NCBI GenBank assembly: GCA_946965045.2
Contig: OX337232.1
Span: forward strand, 3,410,001-3,474,000
DNA length: 64,000 bases
Origin: Epithemia pelagica
Lineage: Eukaryota > Protista > Bacillariophyta
Direction of reading: 5' to 3'
The notes beneath the pieces are model-generated. The model had not been told where the DNA came from. It made no database searches and saw nothing but the letters and a program-made list of their open reading frames with translations. Below are positions 20,376 through 64,000 of the stretch, in pieces (within the stretch, counting starts at the first letter, position 1; every line of letters begins with the position of its first letter). A program made the translations under genes and the position numbers.

Positions 20376-22179
20376 GTCATTTAGCGTCAACGGCTACCAG
20401 TGAGCACTACCGGCTACCGGTACATTCTTTACTCGTACTGATTGCTCCCTTTCAAGTTCTAAATCGGAATTGGACGTGGATTGTGGATACTCGTAGAGGA
20501 TAGACGATACAAGCTGAGTTCAGAGTTTACATCAACGACGTAGGCCCCTGTAGAATTTGTACCAGAGGAGTAATCCTCGATAGCGTTTCGCGTTTCTAAT
20601 GTCCGACACGCGACGTCCTAGTGGTTGCAAGAAATATTTTATTACCTTTAGTGTTATGTGTGATTTCTTCCGAACGCTAGATTTTCATCAAAAATTACGA
20701 AAAAACAGTCGACTGTGTTGACCATGGTGGAGGGCCACCCCATCCGTTCGAGATGTTGCCGAGCTGCATCCAGGTGCCTTAGGGTGTTATTCGACCACCA
20801 CCAATGGGGCAACAGCTCAAACCGAGAAATGGTCGCGGTAGTGGGCGGAATTTGGGCGATCTAGCTATCTGTCGGCGAGCCGTAGCCCCTAGCCAGTCGC
20901 TTCTGTTGTTGGTAGATAAAGTAGACACTTCTTTGTTTTGGACGATATTTCATCCAGCAACGAGGTCGTTTCTTGGTTTATCAGACCCAAGACTCTGAGC
21001 TGAGACGAAAAGGAAGATGAGCTATGATTGCACAATGGCCTGGGAAGGTAGTGAAAATATCTGGATCGGACTAAGAAGGTCCATATGATCCGCCCATGGT
21101 CAACTACGAATGTTGTACCACTAGTCTCGTTGAATATCTGACTTGCAACGGAGCCAGACCGGACTAGTGGAGGGGTGTGGTCTGCTATGCGCACACCCTG
21201 GGCAATGACGGACGCGTCGATCCTTGCCGTTGAAAGGAGAAGCCTGCCATGCGGACCAGCGATAATAAAATATCACTTATGTGACGCGGAACGATAATGC
21301 AGCTGTGCATGCTCAATCGCTGAATGAATGGAACACCGGAAAGTCACGATGAATGAGACGATGGTTTGGTTCCGTAAGCGAGAAGAAGTCACAAAAGGAA
21401 GTTTGGTGCTGACAAAGGAAGACGCACCCATATGAGAAGTGATAAAGAAAGCTTGGCGCTGACAAAGGAAGTCGCACACTATGAAAGTGCAGTGAAGCGC
21501 AATGGAGGCACCAATGATGAGGTGCAAAGTTGGACGGTAAGAAAATGCCTGTCGAAGACAGGGGACAGGGGACTCTATGTCTCCTTTTATGAATGAACCC
21601 CTTTTGTGGGTTGAGCATGGATGATTTACTACATGATTGGTTGTGCGCTTCAAGCAGAGAGCGCATTGTTCTTGAAATGAAGTTTCAAAATACTACGATT
21701 GATTGTTGAATCATGAGATCATGCAGTGTTCTGGGCTGTTGTTGCCTATGATGACAATCCTGTGAGATTTGGTTGCTCTGTGTTTGGATTGGTGATATGT
21801 ATTATACACCGCCAAAGAGATGGACAGGCAAGGAGTATTGAAGTCAAGCCTCTGCTTGTCTGGCAGTTGGCATGAGTACTATTAGATCATGAGTTGATCT
21901 GTTATTTTGTGGTGTCGATTTCACCGTTTTTGTGTGTCCGTGGCTGAGGACAACTACCATCAAGGAAACGATGGTGATGTGATTTTCATATTTTATGAAA
22001 GTTATTTGGATGAACCCTTGTGGTTAATTGAGGAGCAGGGTGAACTAAGAGTGTAACCCTTTCGTTGGCTCTGTTTTTGTCTTGATTAATAATGATGGCT
22101 ATGATGTGTCGGTGACTTGAGTCCGGATGCCATTATCCTTTATTTTGTCCATTGGTTGGTCCGGCTGTCAATGAGTGTG

Positions 22180-53910: not shown

Positions 53911-54070
53911 AAAGACTACGAGCTACCAGTACCCCAGTACGAGTACGATTACTCGTACGAATCCGAACTGCGAATTACGAATACAAAGTTAAAGACTACG
54001 AGCTACCAATACCCCAGTACGAGTACGATTACTCGTACGAATCCGAACTGCGAATTACGAATACAAAGTT
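53911..54070. repeat. Two tandem 80 bp units (one mismatch) upstream of copy E
   Basis: aaagactacgagctacca...gaatacaaagtt twice; each unit contains the hairpin GTACGAGTA-cgat-TACTCGTAC. Confidence 0.9.
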
Positions 54071-54161
54071 CCCCTACACGAAAATAGGAGTTTGCACGGG
54101 ACCTAAAACTACTCTCTTTCTCCCCATCAATGATCCAGTGATGATGCACATACGTTACCTA

Positions 54162-54195
54162 CAAGCTGAGTTCAGGGAGTATGTTCCTGACGTAG
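54162..54195 (+). repeat. Left TIR
   Basis: CAAGCTGAGTTCAGGGAGTATGTTCCTGACGTAG. Confidence 0.9.
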
Positions 54196-54504
54196 ACCCC
54201 TCGTAGATTTAGTACCATAAAATATAATCCTCAATAGCGTTTGGCCTGACTAGTGAATGAAAGTGTCCGACTCGTGACAACCCAGTGTCTGAATAATAAA
54301 TTTTTTCATTCGTACCGCGATGTGTGACAGCTTCCGAACGCTAGAATTCCGTCGAAAATGATGAAAAAACAGTTGTTGTCTAACGACCATGGTGAAGGGC
54401 CATCCCAACCGCAAACGATGTTGCCGAGCTGCATCCGGACGCTTTAGGGTTTACTTGAAACACCCCCAACGGGGCAACATCGTTTGCGGTTGGCATCATC
54501 CTCA

Positions 54505-57500
54505 ATGACACGATCATCGGACCCAACCGACGCAACACAGTCTCGGATGGAACGAAGTTTATCTACGAAAGAGGTTCTTGACGTCTTCAAGACGCGATGC
54601 TCCCCAACCTCGTTTGGATTCTGCGACAAGTGGATCCAAGACACCAACATTGTAGGATACATGAGCACTTGGTTGCCAGGACTGTCAACAACCAGACTGC
54701 ATCTTGTTTTGTCTAAAGATGTTGTCCTTAAACTCTGTTTCGAAGCTGAGACGTCGGAACCAAACAAGTTTGGCTGGTACCGCCACAAAGTCACAATCCA
54801 AAAGAAAAGATACACATTCTTTGATGTAAGCTCCGACACAACAACACGGCCAGTGATATTCGACGATCACCAAGAATGGCTGGAGGCTGCAGAAACGAAC
54901 ACGATTCGGCGGTCGGGACGAGCGAAGCCAACGAAGCGAAGGAACGAAGAGTCACCAGGGTTGCGTGAAGGCACGCTAAATACATCCAAGCAAGCAAGAA
55001 ACACTTCAACTCCACCAGCAATCAAGAGCACTGCAACGCAGCAACATGGTCAACCGCCACAAATTGGAGACAGCCCTACCGAAATGCAAACGTCACCACC
55101 TCACGACAACACAAATCAGGTGCTTGTTGGAGCAATCCAACATCCTGAATTGGCCACAGACGAAATCGGCCATGACCATCCACAGAGTTTGCCGATTGGT
55201 TTTTCAGTTTTCGAGAGTGAGATGATCCAAGGTCTATCGCAACAAATGGAAAGCGCCTATTTTGATGAGCCAAGGAACCGTAGGCTCTTTGCCGGCAAAT
55301 ACGATTCTCCAGGATCGTCAAAACGAAATCTTGAGCGATGGATAGAAACCCTTGAAAGGGCCATTTCCAACGTGGAGGCACTTCCGAATGTGGTTAACAA
55401 GGGAGACATCTTCCCCCTCAACCAGGAACAGCAACAGAGGGTACTGCTCAAGGCAACGTATTTACAACTTTCTTATAAGATAGCGTTGCTTGATATGCCA
55501 CACGGTCGTACATGGCTGAACTGCATAAGCAAAGCCATTAGCAAAATGGAACAGATTTATGGTGAAAAAGTAAAAAAAACATCCCAAGACCATTGCTCGT
55601 TTTCACAGGTACTTTCGGGAAAACGACAGTTTCCCTCATCCCAACTACCACGTTCATATTGGGAAAGAGCCATCGCCCGTCTTATTCGTTCACATACCTG
55701 AAGCAAAGGTAAAGTTTGAATGCTGGGCAAAGGAAAACCTGAGCACTCTTACAACAGAGTCTGCTCTAATGTACCTGAGGACAACATTGCTTCCGGATAT
55801 GCATACCATGATCGTACAAGAGTGCATGGATACGAATGCAACGCCAGTATCGTACGAGGCCTTCTTGGCATCGATGAAGCTTTCCACCATTTCGCAAAGC
55901 ACAGCGTGGCGATGTATTGCTGCTGCAGGGTTCGTGTTCAAGGAACACACGAAAACATACTTCACTGATCGACACGAAAATGCTGAGAATGTTGCCCACA
56001 GAGCTGCTTTTGTCAAGAAGTACTTTAAGTGGGAAGAGCTGTCGTATCGGTGGGTGCAGCTCCCTACCGAGGATGCAATCAAACTTGAAAACGAAGGGAA
56101 TGCGGGCAAGGAGAAGCTCTTGCCAAACAGCTTTGTATTTGAGTACACTGATGTAACAACAGGCAAGTAGATGTGGGAGTACCATGTTGATGCCTTCCCA
56201 AGCGAATTTGAACGGTACATCAAACCAGAAAGCACAATTCACAATGGAAACTTGTCACACAGGTTTCCCTCCGACCGCAAACCTGTCATCCTCATCGGCC
56301 AGGACGAACCGATCTACAAGCAGTTTTCCTTCTCGTCTAAGGCATGGTACACTAAAGATGGCGCAACTAAAATGCTGCCAAAGGATGATGGACATGGGAT
56401 GATGATCAGCGCTGTTGTAAGCCGATCATGGGGCTTCCTTATGAACGGAAACCCGTTGCTTGCTGCGAGTCTATTTCGGATTAATGAACTCCGTCTACAT
56501 GCGACACACAACAAATACGTCTCTACCGAGGCTGCAGTGAACCTCAATGGTCACACTGCCAAGACTCCAATTACCAATGCCCAACCGTTCACTCGCTTTT
56601 TTGAATACGGAGCAGATAAAGAGGGATATTGGAATTATGAATACATGGCCTTGCAGTTGGAGGATATTGTCGATTGCCTCGTGGTCATGTTCCCCGCCCA
56701 TGACTTTGTCTTTTTGTTCGACCAAAGCAGTGGTCATGGAAAACAACAATCCGATGGGTTAAATGCTCTGAACATGAATAACGACTGGGGAGGAGCTGTT
56801 CCCAGCATGCGGGACACACAAATTATTGATCAAGCTTGCCTTGGCCCGTACAACCATGACGACAAACTACGAGTTGGTGACGTACAACACCTCGTCTATC
56901 AGAAGAACGATCGTGGTCCAGTTGCTAAAAAAGGCCATCGTCTCAATGACGCGCAGCGTGTTGCATCGAAGAATACACACCGAACTGGTAGAAAGAAAAA
57001 GCGCAACCTCACAAAGAAGGAGCTCATGGCAAAACTTGTCCGGGTCATGGGACCTGGAATGCAACGTTCATTTCAATCGAAAAATGCTGGTGAACTACAG
57101 GACCTTTGTAAACGCTCCAACATTGCAACGGTGATTGAAGATGATGTGATCGAGGAAGGCTGGATGAATGCTGCAAAAGGGCTCTTTCAAGTGTTATGGG
57201 AGCGGGGGTGGATAGACCCTAACAACATGATCAAGTACGTCAAGACAACCAGAGATGCATTGTTGGAAGCGGATAAGAAGACTGTGAAAGAAGCCTATCA
57301 GGCAGACTACAAAAAGTACTCTATGGTTCATCTGATGAGCGAATGCTCCGATTTCAAGAACGAAAAATCTGCAATGGAGAAGCTGGCGGAAGACTTGTCT
57401 GAACGACATCGTTGCAGGATCGAGATTCTCGTATCGACCAAGTATCACTGTGAAATGGCCGGTGAGGGGATCGAGTATGGCTGGGGTTACTCAAAAAAAG

Positions 57501-57814
57501 TCTTTCGTGCTTTCTCACTGAATGAGAAGAAAGACAAAGCTGCCTTTTTACGATGTTTGACAGCGAGCCTGAAGAAAACAACACCCGAAATCATGCGGAA
57601 AATGTCAGCAAAGGCACGTCGCTATATGCTCGCGTACTTGTTATACGATCAAAATTCCAACAACAGAGACTATGCAGCTGCGGGCCTCTCGTATGCCGAA
57701 ATTGAAAAGATGTCAAAAGCAATCAAGTGTCACCGATCCGCCTTCGACCAAGATCATGGCTTCATCTCACGTCTCTGGAGAGAAACGCAAGGATCTGGTG
57801 CAGTAGAAACCTGA
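54505..57814 (+). pseudogene. DDE transposase (~1100 aa when repaired), IS630/Tc1/mariner-like, with one frameshift and one nonsense codon
   Basis: Motifs ILIGQDE, FLFDQSSGH, GLFQVLWERG and KYHCEMAGEGIEYGWG. One extra A in the A8 run 55572-55579 hides an open frame (HPKTIARFHRYFRENDSFPHPN...); in-frame TAG at 56168-56170. The start position is uncertain. Confidence 0.8.
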
Positions 57815-58224
57815 TCTAATCTCCATTTATCATCAAAATGCATGTAACTTAACTATTTATAACAGCAATCCATTTTATTGAATGTATTTCTTGTCAGTCA
57901 TTGGTATCAATGATCACTTCCGTGTTGCGTGCTCGTGTTGCGTGTTGGCTTATCAGTTTGTAAGTACCTCGAAAATGTGAGAGAGCGAGAAAATGGACGA
58001 TTTTCGGAGCAGACCTCGCGCGAAACACGCCTCCCTCTCCGAAAACGCGCACGCATTGCAAAACTGGCACGCAAATCCTTAAGTAACTCAGCCCACATAC
58101 CAAAACTTCACCGTTTTTTAGTATGTGAGCTCAAGATTTTTTTTGGAATGTGAGCTGAGGGCTGAGGAGAATGCTGCGTTTCGTGTTTCTTGTGTTTCGT
58201 GTTTCGAGTTTTTGCGTTACGACC

Positions 58225-60228
58225 ATGGGGAAACCAAGCCCTAAGAAACAGTATTCAAAAGCAGGCGCTCAAAAACGAGACAGCATGAGTGACAAAGGGA
58301 ATCTTGACGCTCTTATACTTGCAATAGATGCAGCGGAAGAGCAGTCAGCCAAAGCAGCAGCGGCGCCCGAAGCAGCAGCAGCCGCAGCACCCGAAGCAGC
58401 AGCAACAGACGAAGCGACAACAACAAAGCACCATCGGTTTCTTTCGGATCAAGACTTTGCCGAAGTGAAGGATAAAAAGCTTGTAGATGTTCGGCGTGGC
58501 CATCCAGAGAAGGACCACAGCAAACAGTATTCGGAAACTCAAATGCGGCAGCTCCTCACCGATACGCGCACAGCGGACTACAAGAAAGGCGTCGAGGAAG
58601 TGGAGAAACTCCCTTCTCGTTCTGGACGGGATCCAATCAGGACTTTCACCGAAGGCCTCAAGACGCTCTCCAAGATCAAAGACAGTGCTGTACTTGCCTG
58701 TGCTATGGGAGAGTATGTCTCACGGAAGATTTCGGCCACTTTTTCGGTCCAAGAAGCTCCAATTCGGAAGCCCGGTTCTGGCTTGCAAAAGGGGAAGATT
58801 GTGCCACTTTCGGGTGGAATGGGTCTCCCTGTCAAGAAGAACAGAAAACATACCTTCCCGATTGGCAAGCATGTCGGTTACACATTTGCGAACAATCCGG
58901 TAGTCAAGATCTACCTTGGAAAAGTGCTTCTGTTTGAGGTGAAGGAGTCAAAACTCCCAGGCGCCGGGTTTGGCGTTTTTGCAGTTCGGACAATCAAAGA
59001 TGGTAAAGTGATTGGCGCGTACACGGGAAACGACATCACGTCTCGGACAAATGTACCCAACGAGTACGCGATTCAGTTCGGACGTGACAATCGAAGGCTT
59101 CAAGCAGACAACGACGATCACTTCGGCATGGGACTGCACTTAATCAACGACCACCGACACCATCGGTACGGTACAGACAATCCACCGGATGAATCAGATG
59201 ATCATTACAACGTGAGAATCATGCCGAATCTTCTAGTCAAGGCAATCAAGCCGATCGAAAAGGGCGACGAGCTGTCTTTGTTTTATAACCTTTCGGACGA
59301 ATCGCCGACGTCCTCCGAACAGGTTATCCGACCGTCGACGAAAGGTGACGACGACGAAGACGAGGGAAAGAAACGCGGTCGACCCAGTGATGAAAATGAA
59401 GACGACGGGAAAAAAACAAAGAAGGCTTTCGCTACTTCTTCTACTACTGTTTTCCGCCCAGTTGCTGCTGTTGCTCGTCCTCCTGCTCTTCCTTCTCCGC
59501 CTCCTCCGCAAGACGTTTCTGGGCACTACAATTTGCCCCCTCAGCTGCCACCACATCATCCTCCGCCGTATCATCCTCATCCTCCGCCGTATTATGATCC
59601 ACCGCATTGTCATCATCCTCCGCCATATTATGATCCACCGCATTGTCATCATCCTCCGCCATATTATGATCCACCGCATCGTCATCATCCTCCTTCGTAT
59701 CATCCTCCGCCGCATCATCATCATCATCATCCTCCTTCGTATCATCATCATCCTCCTTCGTATCATCCTCCGCCGCATCATCCTCCGCCGCCGCATCATC
59801 CTCAGCCGCATTACCATGGGCATCCCCCGTCCTATAATCAACCCCATTATGGAGGAGGTTACCAGGGGGCTCTGCCTTTATCGCAGCAACAACAACGCAC
59901 GACCCAGCCGGTCGTAGGTTCACCGGAGCGTCCGAGCAATCCCGTCCCACCTGCAGCACAAGCTCAACCCGCCACTCGACCCGATCGCTCCCTTTCTGGA
60001 ATGTTAGTACGAGTAATTGCCTTGCCAGAATTTTCAGAAAGTGACACCACGGATGACAATTCTTTTGATCAGGAGATGTCGGATGACAATTCTTTTGCTC
60101 CGGAGATGAATGCGATCGACGAGTTAATGCAGGAGGGTGAATGGCAAAAGCAACAGATGTTGCAAAATAGAGAATTGCGCAAGAAGTATTTCAAATCGCT
60201 ATACGATAGTGAAAACAAAATCTTTTGA
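58225..60228 (+). CDS. SET-domain protein with His/Pro-rich linker (transposon cargo)
   Basis: EVKESKLPGAGFGVFA...IGAYTG...LHLIND...IEKGDELSLFY matches SET motifs; no Cys-rich post-SET region. Confidence 0.8.
   Translation: MGKPSPKKQYSKAGAQKRDSMSDKGNLDALILAIDAAEEQSAKAAAAPEAAAAAAPEAAATDEATTTKHHRFLSDQDFAEVKDKKLVDVRRGHPEKDHSKQYSETQMRQLLTDTRTADYKKGVEEVEKLPSRSGRDPIRTFTEGLKTLSKIKDSAVLACAMGEYVSRKISATFSVQEAPIRKPGSGLQKGKIVPLSGGMGLPVKKNRKHTFPIGKHVGYTFANNPVVKIYLGKVLLFEVKESKLPGAGFGVFAVRTIKDGKVIGAYTGNDITSRTNVPNEYAIQFGRDNRRLQADNDDHFGMGLHLINDHRHHRYGTDNPPDESDDHYNVRIMPNLLVKAIKPIEKGDELSLFYNLSDESPTSSEQVIRPSTKGDDDEDEGKKRGRPSDENEDDGKKTKKAFATSSTTVFRPVAAVARPPALPSPPPPQDVSGHYNLPPQLPPHHPPPYHPHPPPYYDPPHCHHPPPYYDPPHCHHPPPYYDPPHRHHPPSYHPPPHHHHHHPPSYHHHPPSYHPPPHHPPPPHHPQPHYHGHPPSYNQPHYGGGYQGALPLSQQQQRTTQPVVGSPERPSNPVPPAAQAQPATRPDRSLSGMLVRVIALPEFSESDTTDDNSFDQEMSDDNSFAPEMNAIDELMQEGEWQKQQMLQNRELRKKYFKSLYDSENKIF
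59578..59685 (+). repeat. 3 x 36 bp coding tandem repeat (HPPPYYDPPH[C/R]H) within a longer His/Pro tract
   Basis: Directly visible tandem units. Confidence 0.9.
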
Positions 60229-61134
60229 GGCTGTTTTTTTACAACGCCGCCAGACCTCCTCCAGTTGTTGGAGCAAGTGTGGAAAGGCAAACACCTGAAC
60301 AGTAAAGGAAAGGGCACCTTTTTCAAATCTGTTCAAGACTACACCCCAAATTTGTTGATGGCGATGATGGAACATGATGGCATGGTGGCCAACACTCGGT
60401 ACTTCAACGACTGCGACCCAGAACAGGTCCAAAAAGTCACGACAGATTTCAAGCAGTTTCTTGCCTCAGCTCTCCATGGAATGAAGTACGCAAAAGATGA
60501 ATCATTTGCGGACCAAATGAGCATTCACCTTTCGCTTATGAAGACCACTCGGGAAGAAGTGCAAGAACCTCACATCGACTTCTTGTTCCCGGCCGTAACA
60601 GGAAACATGTCCGAGAGTCCAAAAACGCCATCCGGGAAGCAACAAAAAAGCAAAAGGATGACTCGGCAATCGTTCTCAGATCTGCCACTCCGGGAACGCA
60701 TCCCCTTCATTGTTTTTATGCCCCTGACGGAGGAGGGTATGTCCATTGAATTGTGGAGCTACCGTGCTGAGAAGCACGAGAACTATACGCATGAGTTGGG
60801 TAACGTGGTACAAATCCCGTACGGCAAGTTTCTCCTCGTTCGAGGAGATACTGTCCATGCTGGTGGCTTTAAGACTGGAGAGCTGGGAAATCCACGTGCA
60901 CATTTTTACGTGTACCAAGGAAAAGATGGGACCATCCACGATCCCATGCCAAAGAACAGCTACAATCTACCTTCTGGACAAAGGCTTTCAGAGTGCTACT
61001 TCCATCAAAAGGACATTCCTGGTGATCGCCCTAGTGGGATCATTCGGGTTAACCTTACGCTCGATGGCCATCGCTTTGCCGTCCAGGGTGATTATCGTAG
61101 AGTGCTTCTGGCTACGAAAAAACCTGGTATTTAG
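60229..61134 (+). CDS. 2OG-Fe(II) dioxygenase-like domain (transposon cargo), in frame with the SET ORF
   Basis: QEPHIDF (HxD)...FMPLT...RGDTVHAGG...NPRAHFY gives the HxD...H...R double-stranded beta-helix signature. No stop between 60229 and the annotated TTG at 60265. Confidence 0.65.
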   Translation, partial: GCFFTTPPDLLQLLEQVWKGKHLNSKGKGTFFKSVQDYTPNLLMAMMEHDGMVANTRYFNDCDPEQVQKVTTDFKQFLASALHGMKYAKDESFADQMSIHLSLMKTTREEVQEPHIDFLFPAVTGNMSESPKTPSGKQQKSKRMTRQSFSDLPLRERIPFIVFMPLTEEGMSIELWSYRAEKHENYTHELGNVVQIPYGKFLLVRGDTVHAGGFKTGELGNPRAHFYVYQGKDGTIHDPMPKNSYNLPSGQRLSECYFHQKDIPGDRPSGIIRVNLTLDGHRFAVQGDYRRVLLATKKPGI

Positions 61135-61642
61135 ATCTTGAACAAAGAAGCCGATCAAACTTAGATCTTTCCTTGTGGTGAAAGTGTGTTATTGTTGAGA
61201 AAGAATACCATGGTACGTTGAGTTGCAGTATGACATTAAGATTTACTAGTTTATTCCTTCATATTATACTTTAGTACATTGTCGTGTTGTGTGGAAAACG
61301 CAAAATATGAGATAAGAATCATAGCTCGTCTGGGACCAATCACAAACTCCCTCGTACATCCATACGAGGCGTGCCCGCAAACCGGGACCCAACTACCGAC
61401 ACTGGCAAGCTGGATAACGACGATGACGATGATGATGAAGAGGACAAACAGAATGAGCGATGATAGCTACAACAAGGACGACTACAATACAACGACGACA
61501 ATGATAGCCACGACAATGACGAGGACTTGGACGACGACAATGATGATAATCACAACAAGAATGACTGTAGAAGCACTACCATGATGACAAATCGATTCAT
61601 ATTTAGTGATTAAGGATACCTAAAACGTCCATCAGTAGATAT

Positions 61643-62549
61643 CTAGTATGCCTCGTCCTCATGATCCAAGTAATCGGGACCAAAAAGCCCGTTTTGCTGC
61701 GTACCGATGAAGTCTTCTTGGGTCTCGAGAAATCCATCATCGGCATACGAATCAATGGATGTCCGGTATGCACGGGAAGGATTGCTAAAGAACAAAGGAG
61801 GAGACGACGGGATGTTTTCTCCCAATACCAGCGACTCATTCAAGGTCTGGCGAGGGTCTGTCGCTCCACTTTCCTTCACCTGTTCCTCAGCAATCCGACG
61901 CTGGAAAGCATGCTTCTGGGAGGGGGTCAGTGCAAAAGCTCGAGACGCCACCTTCGGGGAAGAAGTTACTTTCTTCGGGGTCACATAAGACTCTGGAGTC
62001 TTGTTCTCGACGTCGTCCTCCTTCTTGATCTCCTTCTCGGGCTTGCTGTCGGGCTTGTTGTCGGGCTTGCTGTTGGGTTTGGTGTCTGTGGCAGCAGAGG
62101 GCGCGTCGTGAGAAAGGGAGACTCAAAACCAACAATGAACAATCAAACTTACCTTCTTTGCCGACAGCCTCGATCGCAAGGAGCTCTGCCGCGATATCCG
62201 ACAGGTTAGCGCATTCGACGTCCTTGTTGCTGACGAAGAACACTGGGATACCATCTTCATCCCCAATGGTGAGTTGCCACTGTTTTGCGCGCTCGTGCCA
62301 CGACAAAGGACCCTCAAGGTTGAAGGTCACATGCTTCTTTGTCGAAGCGGGAGACTTCGTCGTCGTCGTCTTCTTCTTCTTCGACGTTTTGTTGTCCACG
62401 GTCGTCTTTGTCTTCATTTTCTTGTTTGCCTTGTTTCCCTTGCTTCCCTTGTCGGAGGGAAATGCGGTTGTGGAGGGAGCTGCGGCGGAGTCCTCCTGCT
62501 CCTTCTTCGCAGACTCAGCTCGTTTGGTAGCACTACGCGTCTGGCCCAT
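61643..62549 (-). CDS. Orphan cargo protein (279 aa), two exons 62549-62153 and 62085-61643
   Basis: GTAAG donor at 62152 and CAG acceptor at 62086 join two ORF-track frames. Lys-rich N-terminus, small central domain, acidic C-terminus. Confidence 0.55.
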
Positions 62550-62720
62550 CGTTGGAAAGTGAGAACACAATAGGGATTCGTTCGTTTGATTGTTGTGTTT
62601 GTTTGTTTGATTGTTGCCCGCTCTCCGTTCTTGTGTCATCTAGGGAATCCCCCCGCGCTCATTCGTGAACAATATCGGCGCGCGCCACAAAATCAACTTG
62701 CAGCATGAAGCAACTTCCGA

Positions 62721-63293
62721 ATGACCCGCCGTGCAATGGAACAATCAAACAGAGACGACAGGAAGAGGCAAGGAAGAAGAAACAAGATGACCAACATGAG
62801 GACGAAGTTCGAGTTCAACGAAGAGGATGGCCGTGAGGGTGGTGCTGGTCTCCCGTTCAAGTCGTGCTTTTATGCCAGCGATGTTTGCGCGCTCATCGGG
62901 CCCATGTCGAGAAACAAGGACACTGGCCACAACATCGTCGACCGTGGCCATCTGCTTGTGCAGCGGGAGCTTGCAACCGACTACCTACGGATTGCAGTCT
63001 TTGACCGGGATGCAACAAGCGAGCATGAGGAACCAGCGTTGGTTGTTCCAGTTGGGTTCATTGCTCTGTCGCACCTGGACCAGGTCTCTGGAAAGACGAG
63101 CAAGAACGGACTTCCCATGGGACGCATCCGCCTCTACAAACGCTGCTCCATCAACCCTAAAGCCTGCATGGAACCCCAGGTCGTTACAATCTACATGGGC
63201 AGCAAGGATATGGATCGCTTCAACATTTCGCTTGGTGCGATGATGCTCAAGCACCCGCTTCAAAATCTCTTCTTTAATCATCAACAAGCCTAG
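62721..63293 (+). CDS. Orphan cargo protein (190 aa), divergent from the previous gene
   Basis: Open frame with mixed alpha/beta-like composition; no family recognised. Confidence 0.5.
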   Translation: MTRRAMEQSNRDDRKRQGRRNKMTNMRTKFEFNEEDGREGGAGLPFKSCFYASDVCALIGPMSRNKDTGHNIVDRGHLLVQRELATDYLRIAVFDRDATSEHEEPALVVPVGFIALSHLDQVSGKTSKNGLPMGRIRLYKRCSINPKACMEPQVVTIYMGSKDMDRFNISLGAMMLKHPLQNLFFNHQQA

Positions 63294-63887
63294 ATAGTGA
63301 ACAATGTAGCAGCGTTTTATGATTATCATTTGAGTAGGATCTTCATTCTCTATGAATACGATCTAATTCTATAGTTGTGTTACGTTTACCGTACAATACA
63401 TTGCGTTCAGGTACGGCTGTGTGAGTCACAACAAAGAAAAGAACATCAATCTTTGTTGTGAACGACGCAACTTCTAGTCTAAGTTCCATATATCTAACGA
63501 GAGGAATATCAATTTTTGACGTGAACAACGCTACAAGTGTTCATAGTCTTTGTTCTATCTTCTATCATTCGATTCTACAATAGAGGTGCATTGGTTGCAC
63601 CAAGTTTTGCCGTGAGTCGCCGTAGTAAATCGCGCGGCGACCACCTTCAACTAGATAAAACGACACCTACAAAACGAATGCAGCGCCGACATCGTTCTCC
63701 ATGCTCAACCCATGAATGGAGAAGAGGTTCAGAGCATGGGATCATGGAGCCGTCTCCTATTTGGCAAGAGATTGGTCAAAAGGACCGTTCACCATGGTCA
63801 ATTTTTGGTAGAACGGTAGAGGCATAAATAGAAGGGCTATATTAAGGGGATGGCTCGCGCGGATTACGTAGATTTCCTACTGGAGCG

Positions 63888-63921
63888 CTACGTCAGGAAC
63901 ATTCTGTCTGAACTCAGCTTG
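63888..63921 (-). repeat. Right TIR
   Basis: Reverse complement reads CAAGCTGAGTTCAGACAGAATGTTCCTGACGTAG. Confidence 0.9.
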
Positions 63922-64000
63922 TATGCTGGGTCCCAGGAACGGACGCTTGGAAGTGGTGTGAATCGCTCCCGAGAAATTCATTCAAGCTTTTTGTTTTTTG

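Follow-up and report, generated by a model that had tools for sequence, protein, structure and literature searches.

Transposon-borne chromatin enzymes are already known as a class. In the oomycete Phytophthora, HarbingerS and MuDR DNA transposons carry SET genes (Kojima & Jurka, Repbase Reports 2014, cited in PMC12730594), and fungal DNA transposons of the KDZ and other lineages encode TET/JBP dioxygenases that are presumed to counter epigenetic silencing (PMC12730594). SETMAR (Metnase) is a primate fusion of a SET domain and the Hsmar1 mariner transposase (PMC2847698), and a gene model of the diatom Phaeodactylum tricornutum combines SET with JmjC (PMC3145265). Here, we describe a gene from the diatom Epithemia pelagica in which a SET domain is fused to a 2-oxoglutarate- and Fe(II)-dependent dioxygenase, abbreviated 2OG-Fe(II). 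The window that we analyzed is a stretch of 64,000 nucleotides (nt) of contig OX337232.1 (assembly GCA_946965045.2, positions 3,410,001 to 3,474,000), and its positions 58226 to 61134 are very probably the pseudogenized second open reading frame (ORF2) of a cut-and-paste DNA transposon of about 9.8 kb with an IS630/Tc1-like transposase.

The locus resembles each of these systems in part. As in the oomycete elements, the transposase of a stramenopile DNA transposon is accompanied by a gene resembling SET histone methyltransferases; however, the carriers belong to other superfamilies, being here a TA-inserting IS630/Tc1-like element and a piggyBac-type element, and the SET domain shares one polypeptide with a 2OG-Fe(II) dioxygenase. 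Such a dioxygenase as cargo of heterogeneous transposon lineages is shared with the fungal TET/JBP elements, but the enzyme described here is nearest to the folds of FtmOx1 and AsqJ (PhyH type) and of prolyl hydroxylases. In SETMAR, too, SET is associated with a transposase of the Tc1/mariner group, although SETMAR is a single-copy host gene with a captured transposase in one polypeptide, whereas the SET protein here is a separate ORF in an active multicopy element. The P. tricornutum model likewise joins SET to a domain of the 2OG-Fe(II) family in a diatom protein, but it is a host gene with JmjC, while the present gene is transposon cargo and fold ranking does not place its second domain with JmjC. 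The fungal PhyH-family enzymes FtmOx1, AsqJ, and AndA and the PHD-type prolyl hydroxylases share with our dioxygenase the jelly-roll, the HxD...H motif, and a VVHAGG...PR block; identity to them is only 10 to 16%, and the substrates of the known enzymes are small molecules or prolines. We found no description of a fusion of SET and a PhyH-like dioxygenase as transposon cargo in the open-access literature, and the fusion gene is new in this respect.

The interrupted reading frame and its intact copies

In the window, an ORF of 685 amino acids (aa) occupies positions 58171 to 60228, and positions 60229 to 61134 continue in the same frame. The sole interruption between the two is the TGA codon at 60226 to 60228, 3′ of which the frame reads GCFFTTPPDLLQLLEQVWKG and stays open, with the first in-frame ATG at position 60358. 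The sequence thus agrees with the first-pass annotation, which had reported two ORFs in one frame split by this codon and had proposed a fusion of about 970 aa with either a CGA-to-TGA mutation or a leaky stop. Since related SET ORFs also begin with MGKP or MGKR, ATG 58226 (MGKPSPKK) is a likelier start for ORF2 than position 58171.

A six-frame search for copies covered a genome of 60.5 Mb in 23 contigs and returned 71 matches for the SET piece and 47 for the C-terminal piece, among them 23 full-length close copies with identities of 71 to 98%. The annotation had also considered that homologues might consistently encode the two domains as separate genes; instead, a single open frame of 957 to 993 aa spans both domains in 17 of the 23 close copies, as expected of one fusion gene, and the single frame is kept in four diverged subfamilies. 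Intact paralogous versions of ORF2 are found, for example, at L025:1861-4818 (− strand) and L027:5855-8755 (+ strand). Where the window has TTT TGA, the other 22 copies in the alignment have TAT CGA, with CAA in place of CGA in two of them. The C-to-T change at 60226 is private to the window copy and lies at a CpG; the TGA sits precisely at the junction of linker and dioxygenase, where CGA is an Arg codon. These alignments show the gene structure of the family. Because the compared copies read CGA or CAA at this position, the comparison identifies the TGA as a CGA-to-TGA nonsense mutation in one fusion gene of about 970 aa, and not a leaky stop, which is the first of the two causes that had been proposed. 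To judge from the alignment, the stop codon is simply ordinary decay of one copy.

The transposon and its relatives

The fusion gene lies within an element whose core extends from position 54162 to 63921 (9,760 bp) and has inverted ends of 45 nt. Its features in the window copy are as follows.

54160 to 54161: left TA target-site duplication (single TA at the empty paralogous site; TA on both sides in four copies)
54162 to 54206, + strand: left terminal inverted repeat (CAAGCTGAGTTCAG...), defined by the repeat pair; similarity to other copies starts here
54490 to 57814, + strand: remnant of ORF1, predicted DDE transposase, 1114 aa when intact (tblastn of intact ORF1)
58226 to 60225, + strand: first part of ORF2, with N-terminal region, SET domain, and His/Pro/Tyr-rich and acidic linker (intact in paralogues)
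58918 to 59295, + strand: core of the predicted SET domain, with GAGFG, LINDH, and DELSLFY (profile A4; PF00856 on P0037)
60226 to 60228, + strand: TGA nonsense codon, CGA in other copies (copy alignment)
60229 to 61134, + strand: second part of ORF2, predicted 2OG-Fe(II) dioxygenase, ending in a TAG stop (invariant residues, AlphaFold2 model, fold searches)
60571-73 (His), 60577-79 (Asp), 60856-58 (His), 60895-97 (Arg), and 60901-03 (His), + strand: dioxygenase residues invariant in alignments A1, A2, and A5
61887 to 62639, − strand: ORF3, 250 aa, intact, on the opposite strand (98% identical in other copies)
62721 to 63293, + strand: ORF4, 190 aa (98 to 99% identical in other copies; 60% at the aa level in the divergent C7 copy)
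63877 to 63921, − strand: right terminal inverted repeat (repeat pair)
63922 to 63923: right TA target-site duplication (empty site; four copies)

With the TA included, the inverted pair (54160 to 54206 and 63877 to 63923) is 47 nt long, imperfect, and 83% complementary. Similarity to the other copies spans positions 54160 to 63923, and four copies have TA at both ends in flanks that are otherwise unrelated. A paralogous empty site without the transposon was found 7 kb beyond the window (G000:C5:3480839-3481086). Compared with window flanks 53991 to 54159 and 63924 to 64000, it joins the same left and right flanks via one TA (G000:C5:3481007-8), while the filled site is flanked by TA at either end, which shows directly that the insertion duplicated TA. 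Given this local duplicate of the site without the element, the element is read as having inserted after a segmental duplication of the target, or into one copy of it.

Intact copies contain four ORFs, with ORF2 (967 to 986 aa) located 357 bp downstream of ORF1 on the same strand. In twelve copies, several of which are identical in score, neither ORF1 (1119 aa or more) nor ORF2 (957 aa or more) is interrupted, and on these grounds the element family is considered recently mobile. The copies thus show a multicopy, mobile context for the gene; the first-pass annotation had recognized the fusion but had missed that it is cargo of a multicopy, TA-inserting DNA transposon. Elsewhere in the window, positions 20495 to 20820 are 71 to 74% identical to the 5′ end of the element and the start of ORF1 and probably represent a piece of a related element.

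ORF1 had no Pfam match of its own, and NCBIfam scans of ORF1, ORF2, and ORF3 gave noise only. Among about 30 relatives of ORF1 in metagenomes, the most distant one (E value, 6e-15) carries the Pfam domain DDE_3 (PF13358), and 2 of the 18 members of the ORF1 family matched the NCBIfam IS630 transposase model NF033545 (4e-12). Pairwise, ORF1 and the DDE_3 protein aligned over the DE, FDQSSxH, and KYHCE...IE..W blocks. The protein is unusually long, with about 245 residues from the second Asp to the Glu, a spacing that is far shorter in known Tc1/mariner families. Because of the DDE_3 and IS630 links of its relatives and the TA duplication, we regard ORF1 as a probable distant IS630/Tc1-type DDE transposase and consider the element a member or a close relative of the IS630-Tc1-mariner group. 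On three metagenome contigs, the ORF1 relatives had no SET or dioxygenase neighbor.

The ORF1 of the window copy carries a 1-bp insertion at position 55572 and a CAG-to-TAG change at 56168 to 56170 relative to three intact copies, and tblastn with an intact ORF1 (L025:5178-8519, − strand) maps onto the window in two frames. Against the same three copies, the window copy has 84 private differences, mostly substitutions, and its private transitions are 3.7-fold more frequent per site at CpG than at other C/G positions (Fisher p = 7e-4). This excess is consistent with a silenced copy in which methylated cytosines were deaminated. Because its transposase ORF1 is also broken, in addition to the TGA in ORF2, the window copy of the element is, judged by its reading frames, dead.

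These lesions also bear on the idea that leakage at the TGA is programmed, in which case readthrough would yield a SET-only protein together with the full fusion. The exact placement of the TGA at the boundary of linker and dioxygenase and the existence of SET-only ORFs in related elements would suit such a mechanism. However, the codon is a sense codon in all other copies compared, the intact ORFs have no in-frame TGA, and the TGA change is only one of many private CpG transitions in a copy whose ORF1 bears two further inactivating lesions, so we consider programmed readthrough very unlikely. The leaky stop that the annotation had offered as an option was thus rejected; it is unneeded, given that the sister copies have a sense codon there and that the transposase gene of the window copy contains a TAG and a frameshift as well.

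Related carriers of the two domains were found in the same genome. Two sister elements (L029:500-9452 on G000:C13, and L030) have an ORF1 with 46 to 48% identity and the same terminal TACAAGCTG, and the terminus of L029 shares TA and CAAGCTG with the window element. At the position of ORF2, these sister elements carry only a SET ORF of 316 to 408 aa, without the dioxygenase domain. More distant SET-dioxygenase ORFs of 895 to 943 aa (41 to 51% identity) have their domains in the same order, joined by a comparable His/Pro-rich linker, and such an ORF adjoins a piggyBac-type transposase in divergent orientation at G000:C18:1260983-1275019 (L041+L031+L042), and also in L033 and L028. The piggyBac-type unit is about 14 kb long and has inverted arrays of about 2 kb, made of tandem repeats of about 190 bp, with CTAG on both sides. 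Its transposase was identified by Atlas features only (PF13843; score, 0.95), and a phmmer search against the PDB gave no match. By these assignments, a homologous fusion rides two unrelated transposon superfamilies in one genome.

A stand-alone, single-copy paralogue of the dioxygenase with 33 to 36% identity lies at L032:5080-6237 (G000:C1:6216080-6217237). An endonuclease III gene (nth; L032:6751-8118; TIGR01083; E value, 7e-23) is located 513 bp downstream of it on the same strand, the two together spanning G000:C1:6216080-6219118. The surroundings of this paralogue appear host-like, and the adjacency to nth may mean nothing in a eukaryote.

Comparison of the diverged subfamilies gave ratios of nonsynonymous to synonymous substitution rates of 0.19 to 0.26 for SET, 0.13 to 0.33 for the dioxygenase, and about 0.5 for the linker. 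These values show purifying selection on both domains, as estimated from the copies, with a more relaxed linker. Two subfamilies are 95 to 99% identical except in the part corresponding to window positions 59699 to 62300 (linker, dioxygenase, and downstream sequence), where identity is 83 to 85% (in the comparison with L026 and L027). Since the identity falls to this level only there, the pattern indicates a recombination mosaic, in which diverged elements would have swapped the linker-dioxygenase part.

The two domains of the ORF2 protein

The ORF2 protein consists of an N-terminal region, the SET domain, a low-complexity linker of about 300 aa that is His/Pro-rich and acidic, and the C-terminal dioxygenase. 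A single-sequence search of the PDB with the SET piece gave weak PR/SET matches only, whereas profile A4, built from seven diverged members, matched only SET/PR chains in the PDB (EZH2, MECOM, PRDM12/16, MLL1, and NSD), with a best E value of 6e-6. The paralogue P0037 (967 aa) has a precomputed Pfam match to PF00856. These matches bear out the N-terminal SET domain of the first-pass annotation. The GAGFG motif (GxG; AdoMet binding) and DELSLFY (ELxxxY), with the Tyr that is catalytic in SET domains, are invariant in all seven diverged members.

Within the linker, window positions 59480 to 59880 form a His/Pro/Tyr-rich repeat of PPPYYDPPH(C/R)HH units. The length of this repeat differs between copies, and it breaks contigs in public assemblies.

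For the C-terminal piece, a single-sequence search of the PDB returned nothing relevant, and the few relatives that a word-based protein search returned had no Pfam domain. The motifs QEPHxDF, RGDxVHAGG, and GxPRxHxY are common to eight dioxygenase paralogues with identities of 32 to 98%. An exhaustive profile search collected 410 cluster representatives of the family at E values up to 1e-3, and 38 diverse relatives share Q112, H115, D117, P165, W176, H210, G212, R223, and H225 without exception. Among these residues, H115, D117, and H210 make up the HxD...H iron triad, and R223 and H225 make up an RxH motif. The distal iron ligand, H210, aligns with the His of the VVHAGG block of FtmOx1, and the invariant R223, located 13 residues after it, aligns with an Arg of FtmOx1 in the sequence alignment alone. 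In 2OG oxygenases, a basic residue binds the C5 carboxylate of 2OG. No relative that we looked up had a precomputed Pfam match to PhyH (PF05721). Relatives of 600 to 1362 aa lacked SET, and the three of them that were looked up had no Pfam domain; likewise, SET was absent from the 150 best dioxygenase representatives of other sources.

An AlphaFold2 model from the alignment of 38 relatives reached a mean predicted local distance difference test (pLDDT) score of 81.3 and a predicted template modeling score of 0.80, while a first model from a shallow alignment had a pLDDT of 59.6. Both models were used in four fold searches (Foldseek and VIA-align), in each of which the best 50 matches were listed; with very few exceptions, these were 2OG oxygenases or further jelly-roll (cupin) folds, and Z scores reached 11.9. 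FtmOx1, AsqJ, AndA, and OkaE (E value, 2.7e-6) ranked at the top in Foldseek; in VIA-align, PHD-type prolyl hydroxylases tied with AsqJ, AndA, and SnoK at Z scores of 11 to 12 over about 170 to 185 residues. Searched against the PDB, the family profile found only FtmOx1 (weakly; E value, 0.007), with an alignment that covers the VVHAGG...PR block, and DhiD (a 2OG oxygenase; E value, 0.6). In the Atlas, language-model and shape searches gave PhyH, HalD, and 2OG-FeII_Oxy_3 as the nearest clusters. In none of the four fold searches did the best 50 matches listed include a TET/JBP or a JmjC chain. Overall, the modeling confirms the predicted domain fold, a double-stranded beta-helix of the 2OG-Fe(II) oxygenase type with its iron triad. 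It also supports a fold that is PhyH-like (FtmOx1/AsqJ type) and prolyl-hydroxylase-like, rather than TET/JBP- or JmjC-like. In both respects the annotation had anticipated the outcome: it had expected a structure search to recover this fold, which came with an invariant HxD...H...R signature, and it had judged the enzyme more PhyH-like than TET/JBP.

In the model, the dioxygenase domain opens with a strand and a helix formed by the residues directly after the stop, and the residues encoded 5′ of position 60358 (GxF...P..LL..L...W) are conserved in all subfamilies and have pLDDT values above 90. This conservation and folding, together with the single frame of the four diverged subfamilies, makes it highly improbable that the window contains two genes, a SET gene and a dioxygenase gene initiated at TTG 60265 or ATG 60358, even though the stand-alone paralogue at L032:5080-6237 and the SET-only ORFs of the sister elements are what such an arrangement would lead one to look for. 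A short in-frame intron of 45 nt would also remove the stop, and by eye the dinucleotides GT at 60209 and AG at 60253 are suitably placed for it. The stretch in question, however, is open in the intact copies and encodes the conserved strand and helix just described, so we attach almost no credence to the intron. It was rejected because the intact copies conserve this stretch as coding sequence.

A possible role for the fusion protein

Several observations weigh against the reading of the locus as the decayed copy of a gene for a transposon-borne chromatin enzyme. Searches of the PDB with ORF1, both as a single sequence and as a profile, gave no match to solved transposases. The pseudoknot motif of the SET domain, canonically NH(S/C), is LIND(H/P), in which the Asn is kept and the His is replaced by Asp in 7 of 7 members; because NH thus reads ND in every member, methyltransferase catalysis is plausible but not assured. 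The nearest folds of the dioxygenase include small-molecule oxygenases, and the best structural ties comprise these as well as protein prolyl hydroxylases. Finally, Logan contigs of three public runs show only A at position 60224 and C at 60226, as they would if the TGA were an assembly or consensus error and ORF2 of the window copy were really intact. Rare variants are lost from these contigs, however, which merge some 20 nearly identical copies, and the contigs neither confirm nor refute the T at 60226. The 84 private differences, mostly substitutions with a CpG bias, are further what real divergence of an old copy would produce, and we therefore regard an assembly error as improbable and retain the nonsense mutation as the explanation.

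The intact ORF2 may be a transposon-encoded modifier of chromatin or protein that helps the element. Lysine methylation would fall to the SET domain, the dioxygenase would act on a protein or nucleic acid by hydroxylation or oxidative demethylation, and the fusion protein might mark or unmark the element's own chromatin against host silencing. In view of the SET genes of the oomycete HarbingerS and MuDR elements and the TET/JBP genes of the fungal transposons, we infer that the fusion protein benefits the element, most plausibly against silencing. The occurrence of a homologous fusion in two unrelated transposon superfamilies likewise argues that the module benefits its carriers. A bolder proposal, which we hold only tentatively and think rather doubtful as it stands, is that SET and dioxygenase together form a self-contained anti-silencing module that is traded among transposons and rewrites chromatin at their own copies. 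The SET domain would then deposit a methyl mark that protects, a repressive mark on protein or DNA would be hydroxylated or removed by the dioxygenase, and the element would stay transcribed. The annotation had read the fusion as a writer plus eraser or hydroxylase, in which case the dioxygenase might erase what the SET domain writes.

Few transposons carry chromatin enzymes of their own, and those that do give direct access to the contest in which mobile DNA and epigenetic silencing evolve against each other. The dioxygenase belongs to a family without Pfam annotation, with about 410 cluster representatives, none of which had a Pfam domain among those checked. At least a dozen copies that appear autonomous retain the fusion protein under purifying selection, and its two enzymes provide a well-defined pair to study in diatom epigenetics.

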